Positions 1,175-47,201 of a DNA stretch of 64,000 bases are shown here, one piece after another. The notes beneath the pieces were generated by a model that was given only the letters and a program-made list of their open reading frames with translations, was not told the DNA's origin and ran no database searches. How positions within the stretch are numbered: position 1 is the stretch's first letter; every line of letters starts with the position of its first letter. Origin of the DNA: Chrysemys picta bellii (lineage: Eukaryota); the NCBI RefSeq assembly GCF_011386835.1, contig NC_088802.1, positions 57,164,001-57,228,000 on the forward strand. The letters are read 5' to 3'. Both the position numbers and the translations under genes were made by a program.

Positions 1175-1956
<782 letters not shown>

Positions 1957-3301: not shown

Positions 3302-3639
3302 ATGAAGGTGAAGATAAAGAGCTGGAATGGGGTAGCCTCTTGGCTCTGGGTGGCCAATGATGAGAACTGTGGCATCTGCCGGATGGCCTTTAATGGCTGT
3401 TGCCCAGACTGTGAGTAACCCAGGCCCCTTGCCCTGTGCGGTATTTCAGCCCAGGTGCTCCCTTCTCTCCTCATAAATTTTGTCTCTTTGTAGGTAAGGT
3501 GCCTGGAGATGACTGCCCCCTGGTGTGGGGGCAGTGCTCCCACTGCTTCCACATGCACTGCATTCTCAAGTGGCTGAATTCACAGCAAGTCCAGCAGCAC
3601 TGTCCTATGTGCCGGCAAGAGTGGAAATTCAAGGAGTGA
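3302..3639 (+). CDS. ANAPC11: Anaphase-promoting complex subunit 11 (RING-H2), 84 aa
   Basis: join(3302-3410,3494-3639) = 255 nt: MKVKIKSWNGVASWLWVANDENCGICRMAFNGCCPDC|KVPGDDCPLVWGQCSHCFHMHCILKWLNSQQVQQHCPMCRQEWKFKE*. The 83-nt intron is GT-AG. Confidence 0.98.
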
Positions 3640-6192: not shown

Positions 6193-7570
6193 TAGGGTTA
6201 CCATTCGTCCAGATTCTCCCGGACATGTCCAGCTTTTTAGGTTAAAAATAGCATCCAGGGGGGTGAAATTTGTAAATATCTTTACAACTCCAGCATTCTC
6301 CCCGCCCTGCAGAGCACGGTGCGGGTGATAGGGCGGCTGGCTGGATTGAACCACTGGCATGGTGCTCCAGCAGCCGGAGCCTCTCCTCCCCTTCCCCCTG
6401 CAGCTTCAAATCACTGGCCAGGCGGCCTCCGGCAGCTCCAGAGCTCTTCCCTCCTCCTCCCCATCCCCTGCTGCCCAGCGTGCCGCTCCGTGGGGAGAGC
6501 AGGGGCACGGCTGTTCTAACCTGCTTTTGCAGGGGGGAGAGAACCGCCCCGCAGCAGGGAAAACAGAGAGTTTAGCTCCTGTCTGGAGCCCAGGTGTCCC
6601 TTTCCTCGCGGGGCGCTGGTCGTGCCCTCGCTGGAACGGAGCGGGGGCAAGGGGACGGTGACTGCGGGTACTTGACCGATGGAAAGGACGCCTGGCAGCA
6701 GTAGCCGTGCCCAGCCTGGTGCTGGGGGATAAATTTTGGAGAAGATTTAAAAAAAACAAAGCCCCAGAAAGATGATGGTTAGAGGCCTTGGGGGGGTTCC
6801 CCCCATTAATGTCTTCTAAAGTCTCCCCACCCCCAGGCCCTCTGAGCCAGTTGTGGCTGTGTCCAGATGCCCCCTGGAGTGTGCTGCGGAGCCACACGGT
6901 AAGGGAGCCAGGGGGTTGGAGAAGGGGCAGGGGGGTTCTGGAGGGGGCAGTCAAGGGAGAGGAGTGGGGGGGTTGGAGGTTCTGGGGGGGCCTGTCAGGG
7001 GGCAGGGGTGTGGAGAGTGGTCAGAGCAGTCAGGAGACAGGGAGCCAGGGAGGTTGATGGGTTGGGGGTTCTGGGGGGGGGCAGTCAGGGGACAGGGAGT
7101 GGTTGGATGGGGCATGGGAGTCCCGGGGGTCTGTCTGAGGGCGGGGGCGTGGATAAGGGTCGGGGCAGTCAGGGGACAGGTAGGGGGTAGGGTCCTAGGG
7201 GGGCAGTTAGGGTGGGGGGGTCTCAGGAGGGGGCAGTCAGGGGACAAGGAGCAGGGAGGCTTAGGTAGGGGGTGGGGTCCTGGGGGGCAGTTAGGGTGGG
7301 GGGGTCTCAGGAGGGGGCAGTCAGGGGACAAGGAGCAGGGAGGCTTAGGTAGGGGGTGGGGTCCTGGGGGGCAGTTAGGGGCAGGGGTCCCAGGAGGGGG
7401 CAGTCTGGGGACAAGGAGCGGGGGGAGGGTTGGAATTCTGAGGGGGGCAGTCAGGGGGCAGGGAGTGGATGGGGCTAGGGTGGGGCTCCCCCCCTCTTTC
7501 CATTAGATGCAGGGTTCACAGTTTGGTTCAATGGCTCTCAGCGCCCCACTACACATTGCTCCAGCCCCCC
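6193..7570. mobile_element. Composite or decayed hAT-type repeat(s) with G-rich internal tandem repeats
   Basis: Begins with the Tip100-like terminus TAGGGTTACCA at 6193. Internal GGGGGCAGTCAGGGGACAAGGAGCAGGG motifs include an 84-bp direct duplication at about 7200-7370. Right terminus and TSD not resolved. Confidence 0.45.
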
Positions 7571-8166
7571 GTTGGAGGCAGCGCAGATACATGAAAGAAA
7601 GGGGGGGAGCTCCCAAGAGGGCAGGCCATCGCCCCAGGAGGTAACCTGACTTTACCGACCCCCAACCCGCCGCCCTCCAGCCCGGGGGGCACGTTACTGG
7701 CGGGGGGCCCGGCCAGCCCTGCGGGGATGGGGGGAGCGAGCCCCGGGCACCCGGCCAGGGCCGGGCATTGCAGCAAAGGGGTCTGGGGGACTCTGAGCTG
7801 CAGCTTGTGGGGCAGGGACTGTCCGTGTTTCCCGCCGGAGCAGGACCCAGCCCGGCGAGTTCGCAGCTTTTCTCACAACCACGTTCACGCCCCGCAGCCC
7901 TGGGAGCAACGAGAGCGGAGCGGGGTCCCGGGCGCGTCCGGCTCGACGGAGCTTCGGTTCCCTCCGCCCGGAGGTGCCGTGTCCGGGGGTGCAGGGCGAG
8001 CTCCGCCCACCCCTGCGCCCCACACACCCCCGGGCCCCGGTGACCCTGCCCCGCGCCCACCCACGGACTAGCTGGCTGGCGGCCCCGCGGAGCCCCCCAC
8101 GTGCGCCCGGCCCCGCCTCCGCGGAGCCCCGCGCAGCGCCAGGCGCCTCCCCCGCCCGCCTGCCGC

Positions 8167-8172
8167 TATAAG
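8167..8172 (+). promoter_or_regulatory. NPB TATA-like box within a CpG island (about 7700-8700)
   Basis: TATAAG 60 nt upstream of the Kozak ATG (GGCACCATG, 8227), preceded by GC boxes. Confidence 0.65.
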
Positions 8173-8226
8173 GGGCGGCCGATGGCAGCGCCTCAGTCGG
8201 AGCCGCCGCCGGACCCCGCCGGCACC

Positions 8227-8920
8227 ATGCAGCGAGCCCGAGCCCGCGCCCTGCTCTGCCTCGCCCTGGCCGCGCTGCTCGGACCGCCCGCCCAGGCGTG
8301 GTACAAGCAGGCGGCCGGACCCAGCTCCTACTCGGTGGGCAGAGCCTCGGGACTCCTGTCCGGGATCCGCCGGGCGCCCCACGTCCGCCGCGCCGAGAGC
8401 GGGACAGACAGCGCCGAGCGCCGCGCCGAGCTGCTGCCCCCCGAGCCGCCGGGCCCCGCGCTCCGGAGCACGGTGAGTGGGGGCTGCCCCGGGGCCCCGT
8501 CTCTGCCGCCTCCGGCAGTTCCGCGCCCCCCGCTCCTCTGGGGCCGGGCCAGCCGCCCCTCTAGGACCTCCCCCCCCCCCCCCGCAGGGCTAGGCGCCCC
8601 TCCAGCCTGCACCCGCAGGACCCACACCCCGGCGGGGCCAGCAGCAGCCCCTGGCCCCAGCAGGCAGGAGTAGGGAGAACCGGCTCCCTTTCACCGCTGA
8701 AGATGCAGCAGGTGCTGGGGCGGTGGGGGGAAGGGGTCCGTGTCCCCGACAGTTCTTTGCGGGCTGTAACCACCCACTTCTCCACCCCCAGGCTCTGTGC
8801 GTGAAGGACCTTGCCCTGGAGCTGCCGAACTGCCAGCTGCTGTCCGGAGCCCCCAGCACGATCCTGTGCAAGGCTGATGTCACCATCTCCCTCGACCCCT
8901 CAGACTGTACCAGCACCTAA
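8227..8920 (+). CDS. NPB: Neuropeptide B precursor, 124 aa
   Basis: join(8227-8472,8792-8920). Signal peptide [24 protein letters not shown], mature [32 protein letters not shown]-terminal ALCVKDL...CQ...[24 protein letters not shown] junction in phase 0. Confidence 0.96.
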
Positions 8921-8971: not shown

Positions 8972-9401
8972 GGCACCTTTAAACCATCTCATCTCTCTCC
9001 TGCTTGTCATGGGGGTGGGGGGGAGATGCCAGCCCCAGGAGCGCTCTGCCCCCACATTTCTGCTCACACCCACTTCCCCCTGGAGGGACCTGCCTTCCAC
9101 CCTGCTCACCCCTTGGGGATCCCTGAGGGGCTGGGCTAGGAGGGAGGGGCCACAGCTGGGAATTTGCTCCCCACCCCACCAGCCAGGGCAGGCTGAGCAT
9201 CGCTCCATCCCCCAAGACCACCTCTCAGTATGGGACCACTCACTGGCCAGCCCGAGAGATGCAGGACCCAGACCCCAGCAGCCTCCTAGTCACAGCATCA
9301 GGCAGTGATCTTACCTCCCTGCCCTGTCCCAAATGCCATCCATTCAGCCAGCTCTGCCCCCCTCCCCGCCTTTAATGTGCAGATGGGGGGTGGAAACAGC
9401 C

Positions 9402-9407
9402 TTTATT
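9402..9407 (-). terminator. Probable GNAV1 polyadenylation signal
   Basis: First AATAAA I found on the minus strand downstream of the stop at 10152. An ATTAAA also lies at 9371-9376. Confidence 0.55.
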
Positions 9408-10151
9408 TACATCTCACAGCAGTGACAGGGAGCTCAGAGTCACTCACAAGGGGTCTGGATCCAGGTCTCCTCCCCCCTGAAGGCTGGGAGAAGGCAGCAG
9501 GCTCCTGTGGGCAGGGGGGGCTTCCACCCCAGCCCAATTAACTGAGACGGGGTGAAGAGTGTGGGACAGAGCCTCTGCTGGGCCCCCTGACCATCCCTAG
9601 CTAGGGCTGCCCCAGGGGCTCAGGGAGAGGCTAGCCCGTGGTTTGAAGTTGGAGGCTCCAACTGCTCCTACAGAGAGCCTGCCCCCAGCACTGCTTAGCC
9701 CCAACCGGTTCAGTGTGGGGCTATTGAAAGGCGCCAGGCCACTCAGAGGTAGCACCCACCTCCCCTCTGTCTTTAACCTGAGCACTGTCAGGACACAGCA
9801 CAGGCTGGGGGCAGGAGCTGCTGTCATGGGGCAGGGCCCAGTGCAGAGTTAAATGGGAGATTCAAAGCACATGTACAACCCCACATGCCCCACCTCAGCC
9901 CTGCCCCTTAGGGATTAGAGTCACCATGCATGGGGGTAGTGCCACCTCAACCTGTGGGGGAAGGGGGGAGAGGTCCTTATCCCACATGGAGCCAAGTGGA
10001 AGGAGTTAGTCCCAGAAGAACAGAAGGCTTAGGGATGATGGTGCCAGGAGCCAGGCAGGTCCTTTGACGCCATCATATGTCCATCTGTAGCATACGGCAT
10101 CTCACTTGAACTCTAGCAGCAAGCCTCCCCCCAGCCGCACCTGCCTGCACT

Positions 10152-10342
10152 TCACAGCAGAGCTGCTGCCTCCAGGTTTTCCTGGATGATAGTGTCCACC
10201 ACCATGTGGAATACGCCCTGCACACTGTGTGTGTCTGTGGCGGTGGTGAAGTGGTGGTAGATCAGTTTCTGGGGGGTCTCATTGCACGACAGGAAGAGGC
10301 TGGCGATAAATCGGGCTGCAGCACCCACATCACAGTCTGCAC
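10152..10342 (-). CDS. GNAV1: Gv alpha exon 9 (C-terminus)
   Basis: (G)ADCDVGAAARFIASLFLSCNETPQKLIYHHFTTATDTHSVQGVFHMVVDTIIQENLEAAALL*, 191 nt. Confidence 0.92.
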
Positions 10343-13300
10343 CTGCAGGAGAGCAGATGAGGGCAAGTGAGATGGAAAATCTCCACCGCTTGCCCATGTG
10401 CAGCACACCCACCACACAACCTCCCATCCCCATAGCAGGCAGGAGAGAGCGCTCTCCCAGGGCAGGGTACCAGGAGAGGGCCATCCCCAAGCAGGCGTGG
10501 GGTGGACAGCGAATGTGCTGCTGCTTTTAACCAAATGGCAGCCCTCCTGCCCTATCTGGCACAGAGGGAATCCACTGACGGTCCTGGCCTAACCCTAACG
10601 GACGAGCCCATGTGGCTCACCGAGCCCAAATGGGCCAGCACAGGACACGGGCCCAGGAGCTCACCATCCAGAGGGGCACGAGGAGGCTGCGGCGGGGGAG
10701 CTCTCAGCAATGGGGAAAGTGCAGTTTAAGGGGAGGCTGGAAAGGGGAAAGTGAGGCTGTTCCAGGTCTTGGGGCACAGCAGGCATGAGACAGGGGAGAG
10801 GCTCAGGCAGGGTAGTCCCTGAGCGGGTGCAGGACGGCTGGGATGCAGGCAGGGCTTTAGTCAGAGTTGGAGGGAGGGGCAGGTCTGCCTTTATAAACCA
10901 GCCACCCAGTACTGAGGTGTGGCAATTTACTGCCATGGACACTCCTGGTGTCATGTCAGTCTGTGACATCACTGATTAGAATGGAGATGTCTAATCACAG
11001 GCAATGCTGGGAAAGGAACTTCAGATAGCAGGAAACTGGCAAAAGGTCAGGTGTCAGCGCAAGGCTTAATCCTGGCTGACTTCGGGGCCAGGTCGCCCAC
11101 TGCCTGCTCTGCAGCTCCAGGAGGGGGACAAGGTTCTTTCTTCAGGGGAGAATTGGCTCCAATCAGTGGGAGCTGCACTTGCCACCCACCCAGCTCTCCC
11201 AAGGAGGAGAACGGAGTCTGGCAGTGTTTTGAGACCACCCCTCAACTCCCCAGCAAACGCTGCTCTCCGCTCCTAGCTATTTATTTCAGCTGGGCTCAAC
11301 CAGCACCTTACACACCCTCTCCTTGTCTCCTGCTCATTCAGCCTCTCCACCAAGGGCTGTAACGACCCCAGCTTCCCTTGTGTGGGCTGACTGCCATTTT
11401 GTATTCCGTGTTGAAGAACCAGCTGGCCTTGACAAGGTCCGGTCTATTATGCTGCAGTCCAGCCAGGAGCCTGGCTCAAGCAAGGTGCTGGACTCGTAGC
11501 TGAATGACTGACTGAGGAGCCCTCCGAGCAATCTAGGACCATCAGCATGGATTGCCTCTCACTGCTGGTCCTAGCCGTCTCGCAAGTAACTCTCTACAGA
11601 TGCCTGACTGGAGGGGCAGGACTGGCGTTTCTCAGTCTGGGCACAGGGTTAAAGGGAGTAAGACTGTATTTTAGAGAGGGTGCTCTCAGAGAAGTGGGGT
11701 TATCACACGCCAGAAGTCTGGGCTGGAGGGAGAGACAGAAGGCAAGAGGGATTCAGCCTGGCCTGACATGCAGACTTCGGCCTCCCAGAAGGGATGAGCT
11801 CAGAGTAGGGGAGGGGGCATCTGAGGACTGTTTGTCAGTTTGCAAAGATTCATAACTCTCGAGCACTTATAAGAGTAAAGTGACTGTGGATAAGAAATCC
11901 CCTTGCTAAGCTGTGTTCCTTGCCTTCCCACCATGCTGCCCCTGAAGGGGTTAAACTTCAGCATCCACAGCTAGGTGGAACCTGGGCAGAATGTGAGAGT
12001 GACTAGGGGCTCCAGAGGGATGAGGCTGTAGTTTTGGGGACTGGGGCACTGGGGTTGCAGAGCCCCATGACTTAAAGAAAAGCTCACCAGGAGTGTGCTC
12101 TAGAGACCCAGAGCTTCGGGCTTAAAGCCAGGTGGATTGGGTCCAAGTACAACAGATTAGTGACTGTCCAGAAGAGAGGACTAAGCTGGGTTGCAACACC
12201 TGGATTTCAGTCCCAGCAAGAAGCACCCCTAGTAATGGTTCTGTCCCTTGGGACCACATGGCACCAACTACAGACTCCGAGAAAAGCCAAAGGGGCCCTC
12301 AGTGCAGATGTTCTCAAGGCCCAGGTGTGGGCTGTGATGCTCCACAGGACACAAAACCCTCAGCTCCTCGCCATCTTGTGGTTTCCCCTCCCTGAGCTGA
12401 GCAAGGCCACGCCCTGCAAGGTGAGGTTCCCGGGGGCTACGGCTGCGCAGTGCACTGTAGGACTTGGCCCTAAGGAAACCATTCCCCAGGGGTTTGCTCC
12501 AGCAGAGGGGAGGAGGGTGTTATAGTAAAGCTAAGGATTCATAGGCCCCAGAGCTCAGCAGCGCCAGGTAAACTGTCCCCTGCCCTGTAACTGCTTTGCT
12601 ACATGAACACATGGGACCCCAGCCCCCCAGTTAGCGTGTCATGAGTGTGCATGCTGCCCTGTCAGACCCCAGAACAGGGAGGCTGCAACAAACCAAACTT
12701 CCTAACACTGACCACTCCTGCCATGCCAAGGTCTGCAAAATTCAGCACTGGAGAGGAGCTTCCCTACGCTGAGGCTCTGGCTTGCTAATCTCGGCTCAGG
12801 CAGAGGAGCAGGAACTTAGAGACAAAATCCACTTGCAGACATTTCTTTTATAAAGACAAATCTAGAGAGGCAGGGAAGTCGTCTCAACCATTTCCCATCC
12901 TGCACCTGGCTCCCTACTGCTCACAGCACCCACCGGTCACAGAAGGGACCCCTGCTCATCTGGCAGTCTGTGCTGCGCCTGCCCCTTGTGCAAACCCAGG
13001 AGAAGGAGCAGCACCACGCCCTGCCACCTCAGCTGCAAAGCATCCTTGGGGAGCGCCCAGCGACAGAGCGGGGTGGAGGGAGCCTACCTGTGTACTGAGG
13101 AAAGAAGAGACGCAGGTGCCTGCCCAGGTGCAGGATTTTCTCTTGGAGAAGGTCGATTTTATTCAGAAACAAGATCTGTGAAAAAAGCAGGATGATCAGA
13201 ACCTGCCCTGGCCCTACACTCCTGTTCCCCAAGTCACCTCCTCCCCTCCCGACCATGGCACGGCAGCATAGACCCCACCCACCCCCAATGCCTAATCTGC

Positions 13301-16300
13301 AAGACGATGTTGGGATGGTTACAGGGGCAGCTTTGCCTAGTCTCCGCTGAGAATCCTCAGGTTGGGGGGGAGGAGATTTAACATCTCTCCCTCCCACACC
13401 ATCTTCCCGCCCAGCACTGCAGGCCAGTGGCAAACAGCAGCGATTTAGGGCTTGGTTCATGGTAGTCGCATGGCTCCTTTACTCTGCCAGAGCCAGACTC
13501 CAGGAGTTTGCCAGTGCAGGGGGATTCCTTGGCTGGCTAAGTGCTGCTCCCTCATATGTTGCTGTTGTGACGAAGTGGGACTGTTCTTAATGTTTCCTCT
13601 GAATACTGTGTGGGTGCCTCAGTTTCCCCTATGCATTTCTTAAGTCTTTAGGTGGTGAGGAAAGGCCAGTGTGCATAAATCACTGACACTCTGTCTCCCT
13701 GGCAACAAATGGCCAGGGCCCCTTCCCCCACTGCAAGGAGATAGCTAAAGGTGAACAAAGAGATGAGGTGACCTCCTGGCCCAGGAAAGAGACAAAGCCG
13801 AGAGAAGGAGGGGCTGGAGGGGGTTTCAGAGTTGGAGCTACCTGGGAACTAGGAGTGAGGGCAGACGTGGGTGTCTGGCTCTCTGAACCCCACAATGGAC
13901 CCGGCTGAGGGGTCTCGTTCGCCGCTGTACCTACAAGCTCTGTTTTAGACCGTGTTCCTGTCATCTAATAAACCTCTGTGTTACTGGCTGGCTGAGAGTC
14001 ACGTCTGACTGCGAAGTGGGGGTGCAGAACCCTTTGGCTTCCCCAGGACCCCGCCTGGGCGGACTCGCTGTGGGAAGCGCAAGGAGGGGCATATGCTGAA
14101 TGCTCCCAGGAGAGACCCAGGAGGTGAAGCCATGTGAGCTTCTTGCCCTGAAGACAGTCTGCTCCAAGGGAGAGGAAGCTCCCCAAAGTCCTGACTGGCT
14201 TTGTGGGGAGCAGTTCCAGAGCATCGCCCGGGGACTCCATGACAGCTGTGCTCCAGCTACTGCCAGAAGGCAGCTGGGTGCAAGGTAGGGCAAATGCTGA
14301 GGCTGGTGCCAATACAGTGCAGCCCCACAGGCACCATGAAACCACATCTCCCATCGCCTGGGGTCCAGCACCAAACTCGGGCTGGGCGCAAGGTGTCTTA
14401 GTAAAGTTGGTCTGACAGTAGCACCTAGAAGCCAAGATCAAAGCCCCTCATGCTGAGAGTGCTGGACAGACAGTGAGAGAGGGTCCCTGCCCCAAAGGGC
14501 TCCCAGGCTGAAGAGACAAGACAGGCACAGGGTCCCCTCCCATCTCTGTGCACAGGGTCACCCAGCAAGCTAGTGGCAGAACCAGGAGCAGAACCCAGGA
14601 CTCCTGAGGGCCCTGACAATGGGCCCTTAATCCTCACAGTCCACTGGGAGGTAGGGGAGAGTTCACCCCATTGTATAAATGGGGCACAGGGAGAGGGAAG
14701 CGACTCATCAAGGTCATATGGTCAGTGGCAGAGATTTCCAGTCTCCTGCTTTAATCACTAGACTAGGCTCCTGCCTAGGCCAAATCCACCTGAGGCAGCC
14801 AGAGGGCCCTTGTGGGGAATAGAGGTGGCCGGAGGTCCCAGTTATCCTGTCAGGAACTGGATTGATTGACCACCCCTGGCTTGAGCTGCAGGAACTCAGT
14901 GCTCATAAGGCAGATGCCACTGTTTAATCATTTCATTAGCAGAAATAAATGAACCAATTAGCGAGTGAGATAAGTTACAGGGCCCGGCACTAACTAACAC
15001 TGTCAAGCAGAACCAGCCCCCCCTCCACAGAGACAGCAGCAGCTGCTTCTTAATTACAAGTGGCAGCCCCACTCAGAGAAGGAGCTGGAGTCCAGGCTGC
15101 CAGAAATGGCCCCAGTGTCTCATCACAGTGGCAGGATCCCCAGAACGAGAGCCTGCTGTGCTCAGGTGAGGGGAGCAATGGGCTAGCGGGACCATCCCAC
15201 CCCTCCCGCATGCTGCAGCTTGCCCGTTCGCCACCTGATGCCGGGACAGTGCAGGGTGGGGAGAGCGCTGAGCTCACTGCCCGGTTCCTTACAGCTCCTC
15301 CTGCTGGGAGAGGCTGGGACCGGAATCTATGCAGCCAGTGCTTCTGCGCTGCTCCCTTATGGTGCCTCTTGCTGGGACTCACCAGGGAAGTGCTTTGGAA
15401 GAACACGTTGTTGCAGACAGAGGAGAAAAGCTTCATGCTTTCCAGAAGCCGATTCTGAGGAAGAAGGAAAACTATCTTGAACACCATGGAACTGCAGTGG
15501 ATCAGCAGCAGTGGCCGTGGCCAACGCCAGCCAGCTCCCTGGGGCGGGGAGCACCCCTCTGCTTTCTTCCCCCAGCCCAGGTCCTGACCTCAGCGCCCCC
15601 TTTTGTGCTCTGCTCAGCACCCAGGAGCAAGGGGGCATGCTGGCTGCATTCTCTCGTTAGGAAGGGCCCAGAACTATGCCCGAGGAAGATGGAAGGGGGC
15701 AAACTGCGCAGGCCAGGGGAGAGAAGAGATCTACAGATGGGTAACAAAGGGCTGTGGGCCAGGGCACGAGAAGCCAGCAGCCCGGGGCTGCAGCTGGATC
15801 ACTGGCTTTATGAGAGGGTGCAGCGGAGAAAGGGGGGTTCTGGGCATGGGCAGACCCAGGGGAGGCCGCGGGGAGAACACAGGTGGGATTGGCAGGCTGC
15901 TGTCATGCAGCAGGAATGAGTGTTCACGCCCTGGGAGAGGATCAGCTCAGGCACAGAGTGAGCCCCCGATCGCGCAGCAGGCAGAACACTGGCGCCTTGA
16001 ACACGAGAGAGCCCCGCCCCCCCCCACACTGAGCCTGGCCTTACCAGCGCTGGCTCCTCTGGGAGAGCCTCATCGTATGCACTGAGAGACGCCACAAACA
16101 GCACGGCTCGCATATCCTCGAAGCAGCCAAGCCACTTCCGGCGCTCAGAGCGCTGCCCACCCACATCGTAGAGCCTGCAAGACAGGGCAGAGTACCGTAG
16201 AGGGTCTGCCCAGCAAGGGGCAAACGGCTTCCCCAGGAAGGGGACTGAGCAATAGGTCAGACAGTGAACGGTTAACCCTCCCAGCGCCACCAGGCTGCTC

Positions 16301-19300
16301 AGCATCACTATCCCTACAGAAAGGAGGCATGTGGGAAGGGGCTGCTGCCAGGTCACACTGCCAGGAGTGGAACCCAGGAGTCCTGGCTCCTGGGCCCCTC
16401 TGCTCACCACAAATGCTTCCTCAATGATCTTGAGTGCAATGGTCCTCAACCAGGAGTCTGGGGTCCCCTAGGGGGCCGCGAGCAGGTTTCAGGGGGTCCG
16501 CCAAGCAGGGCCAGCATCAGACTCACTGGGGCCCAGGGCAGAAAGCCAAAGCCCCACCACATGGGGCTGAAGCCCGGGACCCTGAACCCCACCACCCAGG
16601 GCTGAACCCAAAGCCTGAGCAATGTAGCTTTGCAGGGCCCCCTGGCAAATGCCCTGCTTGCTATCCCCAAATGCCAGCCCTGGCTTTTATATGCAGAAAA
16701 CCAGTGATTGTGGCACAAGTGGGCTGTGGAGATTTTATAGCACGTTGGGTGGGCCTCAGAAAGGAAGAGGTTGAGAACCCTGCTTTACTGGATCCACTGC
16801 AAGCACCTAGTGAGCGATGTGCCATTGGGGACGTTCTCAAACCCATCAGACCTACTGCCTACGCCCAGTAACAGCCCCAAACGAACCATCATTCCCCACT
16901 GGAGCCCCAGCCCGGGCCCTCAACAGCAGCCCTCAGCCCCCAGTCCCACCCCACCTGCTCGCTGCTCAGGAGACTTTATGTGGAAAGCAGAGGCTGCCAG
17001 ACGGCAGGCCCCCTGCACCTCCCCGCCCCCATTTACATGGAACCGGCTCTGCAGCCCTGGTGCCCCAGTGGATGAGTGACAAACACGAGTGATCAGTTCC
17101 CTCCAGGTGGCAGTTGATGCTCAAATGAGCCAGTGGAAAATTACTACCAGAATGCAACTGGCAAATTACAGCCCGGTCTGCAGCTCATAAACCTGGCGCC
17201 ATTCCCCGGCGAGCAATTGTGCTCAGAGTCACTGGCGGCACAGGGACAGGCTCTGCCCAGCTCTCCTCTGTTCCAGAGACCAGCACCAACAGGGATGCCA
17301 GCACCTCGGCCTGGCACCTGCCAGCTGGGGACAGCCGGGATGAGAGAGCAGGGAGAGCTTAAAACTGGCATCTGCCGCATTTCCCAAGGGCCTGGCAGCA
17401 GCCATGCCCAGGGCTGTGGGAAAGGGGTGGGGAGCTGAGAGTCGGGCTCACGCCAAGTTATAGCAGCTACTCAAAACAAGAAGAAACTCCCAGCCCGATA
17501 GGGGAGGCACCGTGGCTCAGACCCTCCCACGTGTGGCCCAGGCCGTGTCAGATGCAGCTGCATCTTCCCCCTCCAGTTGTTGGGTTGGTGCCTAAGCCAC
17601 CGCGCCTCACCCCAGGCAGCAGCGCAGAAATAGGGACTGTGCCCTCAGGCAGGGTCTCTGGATGGTCAGACTCAAACCAGCGAATCCAAACAGCTCATTA
17701 CAACAACCACAACCATCCCTGTGCCTCCCAGAGCCCGTCCGTCTGCAGGAGCCCCAACAGTCAGAGGAGTCGAACGCATCTGGCACTCAGCTATGCCACC
17801 TGAGAACAGAGGGAATGGCCCCCAGCCTGAGGGGTCCCCCACAGCAACCCACCAGCCCCAGCGCTCTGCAGCCTGCCCCTGGAGAGCAGATGCCTCGGGC
17901 TGCATTTGAGAACACTGGCCTGCCCCCCGCCCCCGCCCCTCTTGCTGCTTCTGCTGAGGCAGCCAGTGAGGGGGCAGTTAGTGCTGTGTGGGGTGGAGAG
18001 ACAGGCAGAAACCTGCCCATATGGAATTGGGCCTGGATACCACTGCCAGCCCCCAGACCCCAGTGCCAAACACCTCGACTTCGTCAGGTATTCCCCTCCC
18101 CCCGCAACCTCAGCTACTAGAGACATTTTAGGTCTTTATCAAATCAAGCAGGACTCAGAAGCCTTCTGTGTGGGAGGACAGCGCTGCTCAGGGAGGGCAA
18201 GGGAGAGCCACATGCCAGATAAGCCCACACGGGGGGATTAATGGGAAATCGATGGGGCTTTGCTGGTCAGGGCCAGCTTCCCAATTAGCGCAGTCAAGTC
18301 ACTATGGGGAAAGTGTCTGCTTAGCAGGCTGATTTCCTCCGGCCCCACCTCCCCAAGGCTCTGGGTGCTGTCAGGCCAGGCCTGGCCCCTAGTCTCCTCA
18401 CAACTCATCCGGCCACTCCCTACCCAGCGCGTCTCATCCGCTGGCCACACATCTCACCGGAACACCAGGTCCTTGATCCTGAAGTGGGTCTCAACGATGC
18501 CACTTGTGCGCAGTCGGACACGCAGCACGTCGTTTGGCGTGGGCTGGAACTCGGGGTGGACGAGCCGCTCCATGTTCTCAAAGAAACTGGGGAGAGCAGG
18601 GGAGAGATCCTTATAGCCTCTCTCATCTACACCGCATCTTGCCAGAGTCCGTCCACTCCTCCCTAGCCAGCTCCCCCGCCACGGAGCCTGACCAGTGCCT
18701 CTCCTTCACCCAACCAGACTGCCCAGCCCTCCTTTCAGCCCCACATTCTCCCCCTCCCCAGGCATCTCTCAAGGCCTTGAAATGACATCACAAGCTCAGG
18801 AGAGCTCCAGTGCCCAAGCTGTGCCCTACCCCAGTACAGGTGTTTGAGGCAGTTTCACTGACCCAGGGCTGGGCCCCTGAACCCCCCAGGAAAGAAACCA
18901 AGTCAAATCCTTTTCTAACCCCCAGCCAATGGTCCAGGTCTCTCGGCGGTAACAGGCAGCTCCTTCCAAAGCAAAACAGCACACACACACCCCCCAAAGA
19001 GCACGCTTGGCCCCGTGCCCCGGACCACCCTAGGCCCTGCACCGACTCCAGGCCTCCGCAGCTTTAACCAAAAGCAAACACCCAGCAGATGCTGGGGTCC
19101 CTCAGCAGAGCCCCTTCTGCTGCCCATCCCTGCATACACCCCCAAACTGGAAGATGCCGGTTGCCCTTAGGGATCCTGAAGCAGGGAGGCATTGCAGGAC
19201 TGTCCAGCTGAGAACTTAGGGGCCCCCACAAGCCTGGAGCTCACTGGCCAGAAGAGGGGCCTGGGACCAGGGAAATGGAACATCACAGGGCCAAGCTGTG

Positions 19301-22300
19301 GCAGCTTCAGAAGCCAACACGTCCACCCACCCCAGCCCAGCAGGGGTCACCCCCGGACTGGGGCTCACGCGACGCCTGAGGCCGTGGATGAGCAAAGCCC
19401 CAGGATAAGGCTGGAAGAGCAGCTCAACGCCTGGCAGTGTCAGTGGCAGCTCCTCCACGGGAGAGTCACTGAAGCTGCTGGTGCAACCCAGGGCTCCCCC
19501 ACCCCCTCCTCCCCCAGCCCGTCTCGGAAGCAGCACTAAACACGGTGCTGCCGGCGCATTTCCATAATTTCACACGCGCCACAAACGACTCAGCAGCTCC
19601 CGTCGGGCAGTGGTGACACTTTATTGACTCTCCCAATCTCTGCTCTCCTGGGGCTGACAAGTGCACAAAGCGCTTCCCTCCAGCAGCAATAATGTGCTCA
19701 CAATTTCCATACTAATCTCCCCAGCCAGGAGGAGCCATCCCACACCACAGACAGGCTTTCCAAACACTGCTCTGAACAAGAGCCCCATCCCGATCCTCCG
19801 CCCTGGGGGGGCTGACAAGTGGCTGTCCATCCCCCGCCCCCCCACGTTCCTCCGACGTCTTGGGGGAGACATGGTAGTAGTGCTGCTGCCCTCCGTGTGT
19901 CCCAGGCTTCAGCACAGACGTGGCAGCTTCCCAACCCTGTGTCCTTGGCACTGGCTGTAGACAGCACCCCCAGAGCACTGACTGGTGAACAGTTCATGCT
20001 TCCTTCTCCCAGCTTTACTCAGCTCAGGACGCTCTCCCGCAATGGCCTGGCTAGCCAGTAAAAATTACCCTTTAGATCAGGAGCTGTAATTGCTTCCGCG
20101 ATGCCAAGGCAGAGACCCAGGAGCTGCCGTCTCAGGCTGAGACTCTCCTCTTCCCCAGCAGCACCAGCAGAAGGATGCAGCAAAATCTGCCCTTTAATTC
20201 TACTTCCCTGGTCTGGCAGCTTTGGCTGGAGGGCAAAACCAGTCCCAAGCCCCAGGAGAGAAGAGCCTGTCGACAAACACTCAGATCTCTCCATAGCTGT
20301 TACGCAGCCCCAGCTTTCCCCACCCAAAGCTACCCCAGTCCCAGGCGCTCTCAAGCAGGTGGCACTGTAGGAATGGCACAGAACCCTGACTGCAGAATTG
20401 GGGGCAGTTTATATCATGGCCTGTCCCTGCCCCCACAGTAGGAGGCACTGGAGCATTAGTGGGAGTTGGGGAGAACACAGCTATTCTGGTCACAGCCAGG
20501 GGTCCCCTTCCAGGGGCGCCCGGTTATTCTGAGAGCAGGTGCACTGACCTGTGTGTGTTCTGGAAGCCAGGGCCCCACGGGAGCCATATGGTAACTACAA
20601 CTTCCAAGAACATCTCTGAAACAGAAAACAATCAAAGCCCAAACTTGAAATTCATGAGCCTTTCCCCCAATCTAACTCCAAGTTTTCTTCCTCCCCCCAG
20701 GACTTGCAGGCCACAAGCAAACACAAGCACAGAAAAAGAGGGGCCCGGAGGCACTAGGAGACTGAAGAATATAAAATGCAAAAAGATTTCTGCTCAGGAA
20801 TTACAATAAGAGGCCGCGAGGAACTGCAGCTCTGCCAGGCACTGTTTATTCCATCTCATCAAGAGAAGCTGAAGTTCCTGAGCGAACGAGTGATACAAGC
20901 AGTCAGGCACCAAAGCACTGGGGGAGAGCAAAAATTAAATAACATTGACATTTAATAACCATTGCAACTGTTTGGGCCCAGAAGCAGCATCTTTCTATGG
21001 AAATGTTCAGCCGGGGGTAGAATTGCCACTTTTGTTGGGTTGTTTGTATTTAATGACAAACTCGTCTTGAGTCTGACTTTGCAGAGGGAGCCGAGAACTG
21101 ACAGGTCTCACCGTGCCAGGGAACGAATATGGAAATGGGAACACTCCCACCCCAAGACGAACGCTGAGCTCTAGGACGGCCCAAAGTGGCACAGGAGACA
21201 CAACTTGCCCTTTTGGCAGCTTGAGGCAAGAGCAGGCACAAGGCAGCAGCTGATGGATCTGCAGAGGCACCAAGACGTGGCTAGGAGACGAGCGGCAGGT
21301 GTGGTGGTGTCAGACACCAACAACGAGAAAATAAAAGTCCAGAATAAAGCATTGGCCACGTCCAGCCAACCCCCCAGTAACTGCCCCCCGACCAGAGCCA
21401 TCTGCAGCTGCCGCTCTGCTTGAGGCTCTCCAGTCTGCTTCTCTCTCCCAGTGCCACCCCACCACACCACAGGTGGGCAAAGGAGCAGCCCCAGAACCAC
21501 TGCTCTGTGCCCTTAACCCCTCTCCAGCAGGCACATACGCCCCCAGCACAAACAAGCCCAAAGTCCTCCTCGATGGATGGAACCAGCAGAATGCTCCTGC
21601 CTAGCCCCCAACACCCGATCACAGCCCCAAGGGCCTCATTAGCTCAGTTACCAGCGGGGTGGGGCCCCTCCACGACCTCACCCCCCCAGGGGAGGCTGGG
21701 CAGTGGGCCAAGCACAGTGCAATGAGGGGCCCCTTTCTCCCAGGCCCAGGGCTCTGCTCTGCCCAGCGTTGACTAACTGGGTGAGGGAAGCACAAGCTGA
21801 ACTCACGGAGAGATAGAGGCAGCAGAAATCAGGAGAGAAAGCCCCACTCCAGGCTGGGAGGCTGCCGAGAACATCATGGACCAGGAGGGATCCCACCCAC
21901 CCCACTTCTGCCTGGCAGGCTTGGCAGAGACCACAGAGTCTGCAGCAGGCTCTTGTCTTTGTTCTCTCCGGCCGTTGATCCAGCTCTTGTCACTTTACAG
22001 CTGTTACAGCGGGTCCCAAACCACTCCCAACCCTCCACCGACAGGAACACTTTCCCTGCCAAAATGCAGCTGCCCGGGGTAATCTGCGTAGCACAGGAAG
22101 GGAAAGAGGATGTTTTGCTGTGAACACACACAGAGCTGAGGTGGCAGGGGAATGGAGCCAGGCCACCAGGGTAACACTCCTACTGCAGAGGATGATTAAT
22201 GGGCAGGAGGGGCCAGCAGCTCTGAAAGCATTCAGAGCCAGCCACATGGGTCGTCCACCACAGCGGGGCCTGAGCTCCAGGTGCAGCACCCACACAGTGC

Positions 22301-25300
22301 CCATGCACACACAGCTGGCTGCACATGGGGCACACACAGGCTCCCGGAGCTGAGGCCACTGCACATGGGACTGTCACTGCCAACTCCCAGCAGCAAAGGA
22401 ATTCAACAGGCCTGAGTGTTATGGGCTCAAACCCTCCCCCACAAGATCAGCCACACAGCAGGACAGCCACAGAGCAGTGCACTGATGGGGCTGCAGTACT
22501 CACTAGAGTGCAGAGTCATTGAGGCCATATTCGTAGCCTCTCCTGGTTGCTGCTTGCACTCCATCATCAGCCCAGAGGCAGCACAGAGCATCTGACACCC
22601 AGGGAAGCACCATCTGGGTCTCATCCAAACAGTGGCTGCAGGACAGCACGGAGCGGGCATGCACCTAGGACAGGGAGAGAAAGGCCCAGATCAGTTGGGA
22701 ATTGCTGGAGCATCTTGGCTTGGGGCAAGCATGGGAGGGGAGGGCTTCAGAATGGGCCCAAAGCCTCCAGGTCACCCTCTGCTCAGCTCTAGAGAGGACT
22801 GGAGCCTCCTATAGTTCCATCCCCCAAGCCACTCCTGGGACAGACATGTACCTCAGAAGGCTCCGAGCCTGCGCTCACGTGTATGGTGGGGAGGGGGTTC
22901 CTTCCCCATCACAATCCCCTTCTAAAGCTAAAATCTTTCCCACAGTGACAGGTCTCCTGGCTCCAAGAGCAACTGTGTCATGGATGACAGAGTCATTCCT
23001 GAAATGCCAATACAGTGCCTTGGAGATTAATAGTCCACAGACATGTACCCCCCCCCCACCGCAACAGGGAACAGATACACACACACCGCTCCCCCACAAC
23101 GTGGGATGGGGCAGGGGATCTGCACACACAACGGCAATACTGGGTGGCCCCACCCCACTCAGGTAGAGCCTACAAGATCGCTTGCACTTTCCTGCTTTAT
23201 AACGATGATGCGGAGTCTCAGCAGTGAGCTGTTCTAGCGAGCCCCACTTGCCCCCCATCTACCCAAATCTCCACCTTCCCCACTCCCAAACTGCTGCAGT
23301 GACACACTGCACTTTCAATGCAGAGCCCTGCTGCAATCTGACAATCCAGGCAGCATAAAACAAATGCAATTTAATATCATGCTGAACACCACGAACTATT
23401 TTACTCGCTGCATCATTTCGTTTTCTGGTGAATTCAGTAAGGCTTTCCTCCCTCCACTCATCTGAACATGTGCATATCTTCCTGGTTGCCCTGCAGGCCT
23501 GGCTGCGGGAACTGGAGGTGGGGATCACAGACCCCGGAGACTAAGGGGGACAACGGGCATGGGAAGCACCCAGGAGCTGGGCTGGGGACCTGTTGTAAAA
23601 TTTGCAGTAAGAGACCAACAGATCCCTGATCGGGACTAACACTGAAGAGCCACCTCCGCCCCATAACCCCAAATCCACCCCCCCCGCCCCCCCGGGTGCT
23701 GATCAGTACTAGTTCCCTGACACAGACAACCTCTTATAGGTGCTGGAGCTAGGGGAGCTGCCACACCCCCAGCTTGAAGTGGTTCCATCCTATACAGGGT
23801 TTACAGTTCGGTTCAATGGCTCTCAGTCCCCCACTGTACACATTGTTCCCCTGCAACCTTCCTGGGAGATGTGGCTCAGAAAGGAGATGATTGCACAGGT
23901 TATAACTGGGTTAGCCCCACAAAGTAGGGCAGGCAGGAACCACATGGAAGGGGGTCAAATGTGAGTGCACAGAGGGGTTGGACATGAGTAACCCCTGGAA
24001 TCAGTCCCCTGAGTGGAGTTGTGTCCCCTCCCCTGACTCCAGTTCAGCCCTCTAACACTGGGTCCGTGTCCCCTCCTGCAGCAGCCCAGCTACCTGGTTC
24101 TTGCTGTTTGTCAGGTCGATGTGCAGAGTCCCCATGCCGCGCAGAACAAACTTCATGGAGCTGAGCAGATTGTCCAGCACGGCAGGCTGCAGAGAGAGAG
24201 GGAGACGCAGAAGGGACTCATTCTGAGGGCAGGAGAGGAAAGGGAAAACTCGCGAGTGCCAAACGGGAGCCAATGCAGTGGGAGCAGCAAGTGCCCTCCA
24301 GTTCCCAAAGTCCAGATCATCACCACAATCATATGAGATCTGATTCCAGTTAACGCCATTCAGTAACACGGAGTCAGTCCGAGAGGCTCTCTGGCGAATT
24401 AGAGGAATCTGAGCAGGAGTCCAGGGGACAGATAAAGTCAAACTTTTTCATTCCACTAGGAACCAAAAGCTGTTTCCAGAGGTGCTGGGAGAGGTGCTGC
24501 CTGGATTTCCAGCAGTGCCTCTGCCTGGCAGATACACATGAGGTTCCTTATCAGGATAAACGCACGGCCCATAGCACCACTCCCCTCACACAGCAGCTCT
24601 GTTCCAGGGCACTCAGCTCTATCCCTGCCCCAGAACCCCTCTCCCCATCCCAACAGCTGCAGTCTGTTCTCCCCTCTCAGTGGTCACTTGACCATATACA
24701 GACTCAGCTCTTATCGTCTTCATGTTGCTTTCTCTGAATACCTTCAAGTTTGTCAATGTCTTTCTAGTACAGTGGTTCTCAAACTTTTGTACTGGTGACC
24801 CCCTTCCTCTGAGTGTGACCCCGCCCTTATAAATTAAAAACACGTTTTTATATATTTAACACCATTATAAATGCTGGAGGCAAAGTGGGGTTTGGGGTGG
24901 AGGCTGACAGCTCACTACCCCCCATGGAATAACCTCGTGACCCCCAAGGGGTCCCATTTGAGAACCCCTGTTCTAGTACTTTAGTTCTTGGAATTGAACC
25001 CAGCATTCCTGGGGTGTGGACGTCTCGCCAGAGTGAGGAACTGTTCCCTCCAGGCTTTGGGACATGAGGCCTCTGGCATCCAGAGACCCAGAGCTGAGTG
25101 CAAGATCCAGGTCTCCCCCGCAGAGCTGCACATATGCCTGCATTTTCCAGAGTGACTCATCCTTTGGATGCAAGAGGGAGGCCCTTGGAGGGGCCTGGCT
25201 TTCCGAGAGGGGTGCTCAGAGCTTCCTGAACATCTTTAAGGTGACTCAAGCTGGCCCACAAATCACTAGGAAATTTGAAGACACAGGCCATAGATGTTGA

Positions 25301-26760
25301 AGGCAGAAGGGACCATTGTGACCATCGTCTGACCTCCCACACAGCACAGGGCAGAGAACCAGTCAGTGACTCCTGCATGGAGGGAACTATTCTTCCCCAC
25401 TATGTACATAACACTAGCGCACCCACTGACTTGGGGTTGAACTGGAATGTGTCCCCTGCTCTGGGGCATGATGCTTATACTGCCCACAATTGGTTGCTGC
25501 CATCTGACATCCAGAGAGGCTCAGGTGGTCCCTGAATGCCAAGAGGCCGAGATGCCAACACCAGAAGAGGGCTGTTCTGGAGGGAGGAGAGTGCACAGCC
25601 AGCAAGGAAAGTCCCACTTCCCTGCGCAAAGGGGGAAATTCCTGCCCCCATCCAGCACTGAGGTGAAAGCTCCCTCCAGGCCATCAGCCCCCAGTGAGAT
25701 TTCCAGATAGCTGCACTAGCATCCACAGGAAGCCTGGGCTTTTGAGAGGGGTCCCCCAGGGCCTGCCCAATTCAAGCCCCAACCCTGACAGCAGCCAGGC
25801 TGGTGTCTGAGCACATCCCAGGCAGAGACAAGCCCAGGCCAGCACCATTCCCACTCACTCACCAGAAGCGTCTCTGGCCGCCTGTTCCACTCTGCCAAGG
25901 GCAAGAAAAGACCCAGCTCCTGGCCGGGATCCCACTCCCCAGGAGAGAGGCTGGGAAAGCCAGACCTGGACACAGGGGGCAGAGGGGACTCGCAGTCTAG
26001 AATCACCTTAAAGTCGGCTAGCTCCTCCGGGCTGAACCCCTGGCTGTGGATGATTTTCATCTGCTTCACCAGTGTACTCTTGCCACTTTCTGCACTGCCT
26101 GCAGGGCAGGAACCCAGTGTCACTGAATCAGCCTGGGGAGGGGACCGAGTCAGTGGGAAGTCAGGGATGTATAGGGGACAGGAGAGGAGACCGGGAACAT
26201 ACCTGAGCAGGCGCTGGGGGGAGAGAAGAAGGGGAAGAGAGCAGCCACAGAGAGCCAGGAGAGTCGGGAGAGAGAGACTGGAATGTAGCCGGGCCCTGGG
26301 GAGACTGGCCCCGAGAGTTGGGGAGCGGGGCCCCGGGAAGGGGGGGGGCAGGAGCGGCCCCCGGAGCTTGGGTGTGGGGCCCCGGGGGGGGGCAGGAGCG
26401 GGGTCCCGGGGGAGGGAGCGCCCCCAGAGCTGGGGAGCTGGGCCGGGAAGAGGGGAGCAGGAATGGCCCCGGAGCTGGGGAGCGGGGGGGCAGGAGCGGC
26501 CCCCGGAGCTGGGGAGCGGGGCCGGGAACGGGGGGCAGGAGCGGGGCCCCGAGGGGAGGCGGGAGCGGCCCCCGGAGCGGGGTCCCGGGTAGGGGGGACG
26601 GGAGCGGCCCGGGCCCCCCCACGCCCTCACCCAGCAGCAGGATCCGCACCGCGCCCAGCTCCCGCTTCGCCTGCTCGTACAGCTCCCGCTCGATGCGGCG
26701 GCTGCGGCCGCGGGCTGCGCGCTGCTGCGCGGCGCCCCGGGAGCCGAGGCAGAGCCCCAT
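10152..26760 (-). CDS. GNAV1: Heterotrimeric G-protein alpha subunit, Gv class (fifth class), 361 aa, 9 coding exons
   Basis: complement join(26631-26760,26007-26098,24094-24186,22504-22664,18458-18586,16045-16174,15383-15454,13088-13175,10152-10342) = 1086 nt, one open frame, all junctions GT-AG. G1 GSAESGKST, switch I RVRLRTSG, G3 DVGGQ, G4 NKID, G5 TTAT. Features I recall from fish gnav1: MGLCLGS start, PAVLDNLLSSMKFVL, ALCCLWAD, GYEY, GRHLRL, GADCDV, KLIYHHFTTATDT, C-terminus IIQENLEAAALL. Class assignment is from recalled sequence, not a search. Confidence 0.9.
13088..13175 (-). CDS. GNAV1: Gv alpha exon 8 (NKxD)
   Basis: ILFLNKIDLLQEKILHLGRHLRLFFPQYT+G, 88 nt, CAG acceptor and GTAGGC donor. 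Confidence 0.9.
13566..14244 (+). mobile_element. Solo LTR in GNAV1 intron 7
   Basis: TGTGAC...ATGACA ends, a 5-bp direct repeat GCTGT on both sides (13561-13565, 14245-14249), and an internal plus-strand AATAAA near 13967. Confidence 0.75.
15383..15454 (-). CDS. GNAV1: Gv alpha exon 7
   Basis: NRLLESMKLFSSVCNNVFFQSTSL, 72 nt, CAG acceptor and GTGAGT donor. Confidence 0.9.
16045..16174 (-). CDS. GNAV1: Gv alpha exon 6 (switch II)
   Basis: (R)[43 protein letters not shown], 130 nt, CAG acceptor and GTAAGG donor. Confidence 0.92.
16437..16782. mobile_element. hAT (Charlie-like) MITE in GNAV1 intron 5
   Basis: TIRs CAATGGTCCTCAACC...GGTTGAGAACCCTG. Flanks CTTGAGTG / CTTTACTG match at 6 of 8. 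Confidence 0.7.
18458..18586 (-). CDS. GNAV1: Gv alpha exon 5 (switch I)
   Basis: (Y)FFENMERLVHPEFQPTPNDVLRVRLRTSGIVETHFRIKDLVF(R), 129 nt, CAG acceptor and GTGAGA donor. Confidence 0.9.
22504..22664 (-). CDS. GNAV1: Gv alpha exon 4
   Basis: VHARSVLSCSHCLDETQMVLPWVSDALCCLWADDGVQAATRRGYEYGLNDSAL+TA, 161 nt, TAG acceptor and GTGAGT donor. This frame is not in the supplied ORF track. Confidence 0.88.
24094..24186 (-). CDS. GNAV1: Gv alpha exon 3
   Basis: PAVLDNLLSSMKFVLRGMGTLHIDLTNSKNQ, 93 nt, pyrimidine-rich CAG acceptor and GTAGCT donor. Confidence 0.9.
24770..24970. mobile_element. hAT (Charlie-like) MITE in GNAV1 intron 2
   Basis: TIRs CAGTGGTTCTCAAA...TTTGAGAACCCCTG with a perfect 8-bp TSD TTCTAGTA. 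Confidence 0.85.
26007..26098 (-). CDS. GNAV1: Gv alpha exon 2 (P-loop)
   Basis: (G)SAESGKSTLVKQMKIIHSQGFSPEELADFK, 92 nt, CAG acceptor and GTGATT donor. Confidence 0.9.
26631..26760 (-). CDS. GNAV1: Gv alpha exon 1
   Basis: MGLCLGSRGAAQQRAARGRSRRIERELYEQAKRELGAVRILLL+G, 130 nt, donor GTGAGG. Confidence 0.9.
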
Positions 26761-27055
26761 GGGCCCGGGGACTTTTCAAACGTCGCCGCCGCGGACCGGA
26801 GGCTGCAGGCCCCGCCCAGCCGGCTGCGGAGCGAGGAAGGCGACAGCTGCCGCTCCGCTCGAAGCGCCGCGTAGCCCGAGACCGGCACCGGGCTCTCCGG
26901 ACCCCCGGGGCCGGGGCAGCGCCGGTCCGACACTGGTCGCTGCTGCAGCCGCCCCCGCCCCGCACGGGACACGTGCAGCGCCGCCCGCGGGCCCGGGGCT
27001 CCGCCACAGCCCGCCCCGCGCGGGGCCACTCACCACACCCAAACGGCTCAACAAG

Positions 27056-27061
27056 TTTATT
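27056..27061 (-). terminator. Probable PCYT2 polyadenylation signal
   Basis: First AATAAA I found on the minus strand after the PCYT2 stop (28777), followed about 15-30 nt later by the GU-rich tract GTTTGGGTGTGGTG. Confidence 0.55.
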
Positions 27062-27189
27062 ATTTTCCACCACACGTACAAGAGCGACAGACAGAAAACG
27101 GCCAGGCTGGAAGGGGGTGCAGCCCGCCCAACATCCCCCCAGGTGGGACCCAGCACCCGCTACTCCCCAGCCGCGGTGCTGCCCTCCCA

Positions 27190-27780
27190 CGCGCGGGACG
27201 GGCAGGCGGACTGCCCGCTCCCTGGTTCGAGTACAGGCGAGACAGCAGCCCACGAGCGGGATGGGCAGGCGGACTGCCCACGCCCTGCTTAGAGTACAGG
27301 CGAGGCACTAGCCCACGAGTGGTAACCGGCCGGCGGACTGCCTGCTCCCTGGTTAGAGTACAGGCGAGGCAGTAGCCCACGAGATGTAACCGGCCGGCGG
27401 ACTGCCCGCACCCTGGTTAGAGTACAGGCGGGATAGCAGCCCACAAGCGGGAACAGGCAGGCGGACTGCCCGCACCCTGGTTAGAGTACAGGCGGGATAG
27501 CAGCCCACAAGCGGGAACAGGCAGGCGGACTACCTGCTCCCTGGTTAGAGTACAGGCGAGGCAGTAGCCCACGAGATGTAACCGGCAGGCAGACTGCCCA
27601 CGCCCTGGTTAGAGTACAGGCGAGGCAGTAGCCCATGAGCGGTAACCGGCAGGCAGACTGCCCATGCCCTGCTTAGAGTACAGCGAGACAGCAGCCCACG
27701 AGCGGGAACAGGCAGGCAGACTGCCCGCTCCCTGGTTAGAATACAGGCTAGGCAGTAGCCCACGAGCAGGAACGGGCAGC
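27190..27780. repeat. 63-64 bp minisatellite, about 9 copies
   Basis: Anchor motif CTGGTTAGAGTACAGGCG (with minor variants) recurs at 27222, 27285, 27349, 27413, 27477, 27541, 27605, 27669 and 27732. Confidence 0.92.

Positions 27781-28776: not shown

Positions 28777-47201
<18,425 letters not shown>

Follow-up and report, generated by a model that had tools for sequence, protein, structure and literature searches.

A Gv-class (GNAV1) G-alpha gene in the painted turtle and its decay in other turtle lineages

The Gv class of heterotrimeric G-protein alpha subunits (G-alpha), the fifth of the G-alpha classes and said to go back to Oka et al. 2009, is the least understood of them. Here, we analyze its single vertebrate gene, GNAV1, on the minus strand of a 64,000-nucleotide stretch of the painted turtle genome (Chrysemys picta bellii, contig NC_088802.1, positions 57,164,001 to 57,228,000; hereafter the window, in whose coordinates all positions are given). 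Vertebrate GNAV is defined by a coding region in nine exons, with exon 7 split and intron 2 displaced relative to GNAI, and six exon borders are common to GNAV and the Gi/o genes (Lokits et al., PMC5896119). The gene order PCYT2-GNAV-NPB has been published for gar, arowana, catfish, and medaka (PMC6684226). For tetrapods, the literature reports a loss: GNAV "was lost ... at the base of Tetrapoda" according to a study of 2018 in which one turtle was interrogated (PMC5896119), and "its loss in tetrapods" was repeated in 2024 (PMC11087313). A first-pass annotation, made from the letters of the window alone, had pointed to this reported loss—rightly, as both papers state it—and had proposed an intact Gv gene in an amniote, probably a turtle. 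Identity, tree, intron positions, and synteny all mark the window gene as a genuine Gv/GNAV1 orthologue, and a known family is found here in a lineage where it has been declared absent.

Gene structure and orthology

Rebuilt from the raw sequence, the nine exons span 26760..10152 on the minus strand and splice into 1086 nt, that is, 361 codons and a TGA. All eight introns are of the GT..AG type with pyrimidine-rich acceptors, the exon phases are compatible, and an in-frame stop lies eight codons 5' of the ATG. Every detail of the 361-residue open reading frame (ORF) proposed earlier was recovered in this way. The features of the gene are the following.

Exon 1: 26631..26760, minus strand; 130 nt, ATG at 26760, putative lipidation motif MGLCLGS, ends in phase 1, donor GTGAGG
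Exon 2: 26007..26098, minus strand; 92 nt, P-loop GSAESGKST, Pfam G-alpha positions 30-58, length equal to Takifugu gnav1 exon 2
Exon 3: 24094..24186, minus strand; 93 nt, PAVLDNLL, length compared with Takifugu gnav1
Exon 4: 22504..22664, minus strand; 161 nt, helical domain, CLWADDG
Exon 5: 18458..18586, minus strand; 129 nt, switch I with R183 and T186
Exon 6: 16045..16174, minus strand; 130 nt, switch II with Q209, 60.8 bits to G-alpha, joint to exon 7 in contigs of four runs
Exon 7: 15383..15454, minus strand; 72 nt, first half of the GNAV-specific split exon, joints 15454/16045 and 13175/15383 in contigs
Exon 8: 13088..13175, minus strand; 88 nt, NKID (G4 box), GRHLRL, joints in contigs
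Exon 9, coding part: 10152..10342, minus strand; 191 nt, GADCDV, TTATDT (G5 box), alpha-5 helix ending in ENLEAAALL, TGA at 10154-10152
Joint of exons 9 and 8: 10340/13086 (cut +2), minus strand; 2745 nt skipped, seen in three runs
3' untranslated region: 9371..10151, minus strand; AATAAA at 9407-9402 and ATTAAA at 9376-9371, both some 750 nt 3' of the stop
CpG island at the start codon and the presumed promoter: 26501..27500, no strand; GC 0.81 and 0.67, CpG observed/expected 0.90 and 0.74

The CpG-island 5' end and the candidate poly(A) site (AATAAA, ATTAAA) that had been noticed before are both present; the CpG observed/expected ratio amounts to 0.13-0.16 in the gene body versus 0.90 at 26501-27000, where the GC content is 0.81.

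The spliced protein is 100% identical to XP_005283122.2 of Chrysemys picta bellii; its identity reaches 98% with the models of Malaclemys and Trachemys and 93% with KAG6936821.1 of Chelydra serpentina. The turtle origin suspected earlier is thereby borne out, and so is the guess at the name an automated pipeline would give, since the RefSeq entry is called 'G(o) subunit alpha-like'. The sequence itself is not new; it is a long-standing RefSeq model under a misleading name. The Pfam G-alpha profile (PF00503) matches over its full length (364.9 bits, profile positions 3-333 of 333), with the exon-derived peptides in colinear order. All five guanine-nucleotide boxes and the catalytic residues are in place (GSAESGKST, R183, T186, DVGGQ with Q209, NKID, TTATDT), and an alignment of 32 sequences shows no or almost no variation at these columns. 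An AF2 model of the protein—mean predicted local distance difference test (pLDDT) 84.5—displays the Ras-like and helical domains of the G-alpha fold and superimposes in Foldseek on Gi, Gt, and Gq structures with template modeling (TM) scores of 0.85-0.92.

Aligned over all 361 residues with zero gaps, sequences that bear the name G protein alpha v1 in Polypterus, teleosts, sturgeon, bowfin, coelacanth, sharks, and chimaera are 66-70% identical to the turtle protein; identity to an amphioxus protein is 61%. The best nonturtle matches are all named alpha v1 or are fish paralogues of such proteins. The motifs MGLCLGS, the AAESGKST-type P-loop, KPAVLDNLL, CLWAD, GRHLRL, GADCDV, HHFTTATDT, and ENLEA..LL—named in the first-pass annotation as hallmarks of the class—occur both in the window protein and in the consensus of 35 named Gv proteins. 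In a maximum-likelihood tree (LG+C20), whose outgroups were Gq-like, Go-like, and unnamed distant rows without Gs or G12/13 references, the three turtle rows fall within vertebrate Gv (support 99/96) and chordate Gv (100/100), together with the gnav1 of fishes, sharks, and coelacanth, while the Gq-like and Go-like rows stay outside. The exon chain of Takifugu gnav1, derived here as the reference for intron positions and synteny, measures 127/92/93/161/129/130/72/88/191 nt, compared with 130/92/93/161/129/130/72/88/191 nt in the turtle: exon 1 differs by one codon, exons 2-9 have the same length, and all phases are identical. Hence, the turtle gene shares with fish, shark, and coelacanth gnav1 the colinear 361 residues, the signature motifs, the eight intron positions and phases, the clade, and, as described below, the PCYT2 and NPB neighbors; its host, on the other hand, is an amniote.

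The RefSeq name implies a divergent member of the Gi/o class (GNAI1-3, GNAO1, GNAT) instead. Apart from this automatic name, the best PDB sequence matches, Gi2 and Go, point in that direction, and the turtle protein has the G-alpha fold (TM 0.85-0.9) and the N-terminal MG..C motif in common with that class. However, identity to the PDB structures is only 44-47% for Gi/Go/Gt (and 40-43% for Gq) versus 66-70% for gnav1, and the tree places the protein apart from the Go-like row. The turtle gene has nine coding exons with a shifted intron 2 and a split exon 7, whereas Gi/o genes have eight, and the chromosomal neighborhood differs. In the Gi/o class, a Cys at position -4 is the pertussis toxin site; the window protein ends in EAAALL without a Cys at this position. 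Gi/o membership was rejected on identity, tree, exon number, and C-terminus, and we regard it as very improbable.

The order PCYT2-GNAV-NPB, with NPB on the opposite strand, is found in the window, at seven further turtle loci, and in Takifugu.

PCYT2 (partial), upstream neighbor: 28777..37112, minus strand; 96.7% identity over 8375 nt to a Malaclemys interval with a CTP_transf_like product
NPB (neuropeptide B), downstream convergent neighbor: 8182..8920 (8101..8920 when counted from the start of the ORF), plus strand; ORF 8101-8673, turtle-locus product with Pfam NPBW

This neighborhood also bears on whether the locus might be an assembly artefact, be it a contaminating fish contig or a processed copy. 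No evidence supporting an artefact was found, whereas the flanking sequences align to Malaclemys at 96-97% identity for 8-13 kb, the locus and its neighbors recur in seven turtle assemblies, and the gene bears eight introns and appears in its intron-containing form in whole-genome-sized sequencing runs. Contamination and a processed retrocopy were both rejected on these grounds; the probability left to them is negligible.

Several further elements were observed around the gene. The NPB ORF begins with a signal peptide, and the 3' ends of NPB and Gv lie less than about 500 bp apart. Beyond NPB, the window also holds ALYREF (475-1956, minus strand) and ANAPC11 (3302-3639, plus strand); ALYREF, ANAPC11, PCYT2, and NPB form the same block as on human 17q25.3, where no G-alpha gene is known between PCYT2 and NPB. 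Long spurious ORFs rich in Gly and Arg arise from two G-rich tandem repeats: 6 copies of a 40-bp unit at 2227-2469, directly upstream of ALYREF, and 2.9 copies of an 84-bp unit at 7178-7423, in the interval from ANAPC11 to NPB. Between Gv and PCYT2, 430-1000 bp 5' of the Gv start codon, there is a tandem array of a 64-bp unit (27186-27779; 9.3 copies, 86% match, 192-bp higher-order period). Within the gene, a candidate alternative in-frame acceptor lies 36 nt 5' of exon 3 (24187-24222, minus strand); its use would add NESLLRLPLSLQ, and its counterpart is used in the 373-aa RefSeq model of Trachemys. As fish exon 3 measures 93 nt, the short exon 3 is the conserved form.

Transcripts and the state of the gene across turtles

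Thirteen small public sequencing runs contain a fraction of 0.19-0.20 of the sampled words of exon 6-intron-exon 7, which equals the exon share, compared with 1.00 in whole-genome-sized runs. Four runs from four studies, taken as RNA at a guess from their size, were compared over window positions 10175-16174. In three of these (X10, X15, and X30, from three studies), one contig each of 1282-1746 nt covers exons 9-8-7-6 with zero mismatches and omits exactly 2745, 2207, and 590 nt; the ends of the omitted pieces read CT..AC on the plus strand, that is, GT..AG on the gene strand. The fourth run, X28, contains the joint of exons 6 and 7. Judged from their length, the contigs of X10 and X15 would extend into exon 1, and that of X10 would reach 764 nt 3' of position 10175, ending near 9411. 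Because exact intron removal is a cDNA signature, the contigs of all four runs are read as cDNA-derived and are probably of RNA origin. Hence, mature spliced Gv transcripts exist. Of the eight junctions that the first-pass annotation had proposed to confirm by RNA, the three between exons 6 and 9 are matched exactly.

Within intron 7, the stretch 13565-14374 has a summed contig depth of hundreds to thousands in all four RNA-like runs. This coverage consists of many short contigs of 95-99% identity with loose ends and probably stems from a dispersed transcribed repeat, for example, a transposable element.

For a comparison within turtles, each window exon with 30-nt flanks was aligned to seven orthologous loci. 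In Chrysemys, Malaclemys, and Chelydra, all nine exons are in frame and 16 of 16 splice dinucleotides are intact. The same holds for the frames and splice sites of eight of the nine exons of Trachemys, whose exon 8 was omitted as it lies in an N-masked stretch. The copies of Chelonia, Caretta, Emys orbicularis, and Platysternon occupy the orthologous locus, retain the nine exons at 87-98% nucleotide identity to the window copy, and are pseudogenes with the following lesions, none of which is present in the window copy.

Chelonia and Caretta, common lesions: 10 bp deleted from exon 1; stop in exon 6 (CGA>TGA); TEHQNW in place of SERRKW
Chelonia only: loss of the acceptor of exon 6
Caretta only: 6 bp deleted from the G5 box
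Emys orbicularis: donor of exon 4 removed by a 17-bp deletion; in exon 9, +1 and -17, with HHFTTA (G5 box) deleted; R>C in DVGGQR
Platysternon: 16-bp and 24-bp deletions in exon 1; in exon 4, TGC>TGA and 11 bp deleted; in exon 6, +1 and TAC>TAA; 6 bp deleted from the G5 box

In the accepted turtle tree, Chelydra groups with the sea turtles, and Platysternon and Emys group with the emydids. Given this tree, Gv was inactivated at least three times independently: in Cheloniidae, in Emys orbicularis, and in Platysternon. As the orthologue is dead in these lineages, loss of Gv is tolerated, and Gv is not generally needed in turtles. This repeated and ongoing pseudogenization within turtles is a finding added by the present analysis.

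In the predicted sea-turtle 'proteins', which are annotations of a pseudogene, exon 5 is translated in the wrong frame and exon 6 is left out. More broadly, a number of deposited 'proteins' of 108-353 aa are translations of GNAV pseudogenes—TFK05906.1 (Platysternon), EMP32450.1 and XP_043383547.1 (Chelonia), XP_065271114.1 (Emys), and CAM... sea-turtle entries. Their defects are a wrong frame in exon 5, the omission of exon 6, or a frameshift at the C-terminus, and one of them is named coiled-coil domain-containing protein 38.

Selective constraint and divergence

The ratio of nonsynonymous to synonymous rates (dN/dS, omega) is 0.22-0.41 in pairs of intact copies and 0.5-0.9 if the pair includes a pseudogene. 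A codon model for Chrysemys, Malaclemys, and Chelydra yields an omega of 0.374 (kappa 6.9), and omega = 1 is rejected (log-likelihood -1703.23 versus -1708.92, twice the difference 11.4, p about 7e-4). The check for selection among turtles that the first-pass annotation had suggested therefore speaks against neutrality, and purifying selection acts in the lineages that keep the ORF, that is, Chrysemys, Malaclemys, Trachemys, and Chelydra. Parsimony counts of nonsynonymous to synonymous changes (N:S), which are small and root-dependent and give a trend only, are the following, with a neutral site ratio of about 3.2: 35:13 and a stop on the sea-turtle stem and 15:4 and two stops for Platysternon, compared with 8:8 for Chelydra and 2:5 for Chrysemys. 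Of the 128 columns that are strictly invariant in 35 other Gv proteins, 122 are kept in the window protein.

Taken together, the window gene is the turtle GNAV1 orthologue and most likely encodes a working heterotrimeric G-protein alpha subunit. Several observations weigh against the second half of this statement. In sea turtles, Emys, and Platysternon, the orthologous copy is plainly a pseudogene. An omega of 0.37 is high for a G-alpha and marks a constraint weaker than that on fish, shark, and coelacanth gnav1; on the internal testudinoid branches, the parsimony counts are near neutral at about 20 N to 9 S—again as a trend only. The turtle stem branch measures 0.38 substitutions per site, about twice the 0.19 of coelacanth, and Chrysemys deviates at 32 of the 228 columns with a conservation of at least 90% among other Gv proteins (the median species at 2), with 28 of these 32 changes common to Chelydra. 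Seven conserved-column changes fall within the last 30 residues, at the receptor-contacting end of alpha-5, where the near-invariant TSNVQVVFQVVMDTIIKENLEAVSLL of fish, shark, and coelacanth gnav1 faces THSVQGVFHMVVDTIIQENLEAAALL in Chrysemys. In addition, the RNA status of the runs is the guess mentioned above, and direct sight of splicing is confined to three of the eight junctions (exons 6 to 9).

The independent pseudogenizations, the accelerated stem with its many changes at conserved positions, and the near-neutral internal branches would all suit a unitary pseudogene in waiting, in which function was lost in the turtle ancestor and the Chrysemys copy stays transcribed and open only through the slow evolution of turtle DNA. 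However, neutrality is rejected for the intact copies, and frames and splice sites are kept in four species across the Chelydra/emydid split (within the eight exons available for Trachemys). Over comparable branches, Platysternon gained two stops and several frameshifts and Emys three indels. The 2:5 count on the Chrysemys terminal branch and the complete set of catalytic residues likewise count against this reading. In view of the rejected omega of 1, the four species with intact copies, and the speed at which the dead lineages gained lesions, we consider a pseudogene in waiting unlikely. The earlier claim that this lineage keeps a functional Gv class hence stands as likely but not certain: an omega below 1, spliced transcripts, and the intact ORF speak for it, while the moderate constraint, the accelerated stem, and the dead relatives temper it. 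The constraint on intact turtle Gv is real but weak for a G-alpha.

Possible role and significance

As a working G-alpha, turtle Gv would be lipidated at its MGLCLGS (MGxC) N-terminus and thereby anchored to the membrane, a receptor would drive GDP/GTP exchange via the C-terminal alpha-5 helix, and R183 and Q209 would hydrolyze GTP; there is no pertussis-toxin Cys at -4. Judged from the sequence, such biochemical activity—GTP binding and hydrolysis, G-beta-gamma binding, receptor coupling—is probable, not proven. Zebrafish is the sole source of functional data for the class: in its gnav1 knockout, Ca, Mg, and K are reduced, and there are changes in renal ion transporters, hatching, oviposition, and craniofacial cartilage (PMC11087313). 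By analogy, turtle Gv might possibly play a role in ionic homeostasis.

Gv might even have survived as a working amniote signaling class for more than 300 million years, kept selectively by those turtles that spend the winter under water (Chrysemys, Trachemys, Malaclemys, and Chelydra), perhaps for Ca/Mg/K homeostasis. In that case, sea turtles, Emys, and Platysternon would represent natural knockouts, and the rewritten alpha-5 C-terminus would mean a changed receptor partner. We hold this scenario to be quite improbable, and the link of Gv retention to underwater overwintering is speculation; it is contradicted by Emys, whose copy is dead and which also hibernates under water.

Turtles are the only tetrapods among the best 120 matches of the full-length protein in a collection of 5.8 billion proteins, with unannotated genes or pseudogenes possible elsewhere. 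A search with exon 9 only, against representatives at 50% identity, returned turtle proteins first; the matches are mostly short fragments, and the nonturtle ones bear the fish-type C-terminus. A full-text search, with most subscription journals outside its scope and an earlier report thus possible, yielded no paper that links GNAV/Gv to turtles or any tetrapod.

An intact, expressed, and constrained Gv in cryptodiran turtles implies that the class was lost several times independently, in amphibians, mammals, lepidosaurs, archosaurs, and a number of turtle lineages, and not just once. In addition, it exposes a systematic misnaming in RefSeq, where these genes are filed as 'G(o) subunit alpha-like'. 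The painted turtle offers an amniote for studying Gv, and the intact and dead copies within one order form a natural series to test what Gv is needed for.

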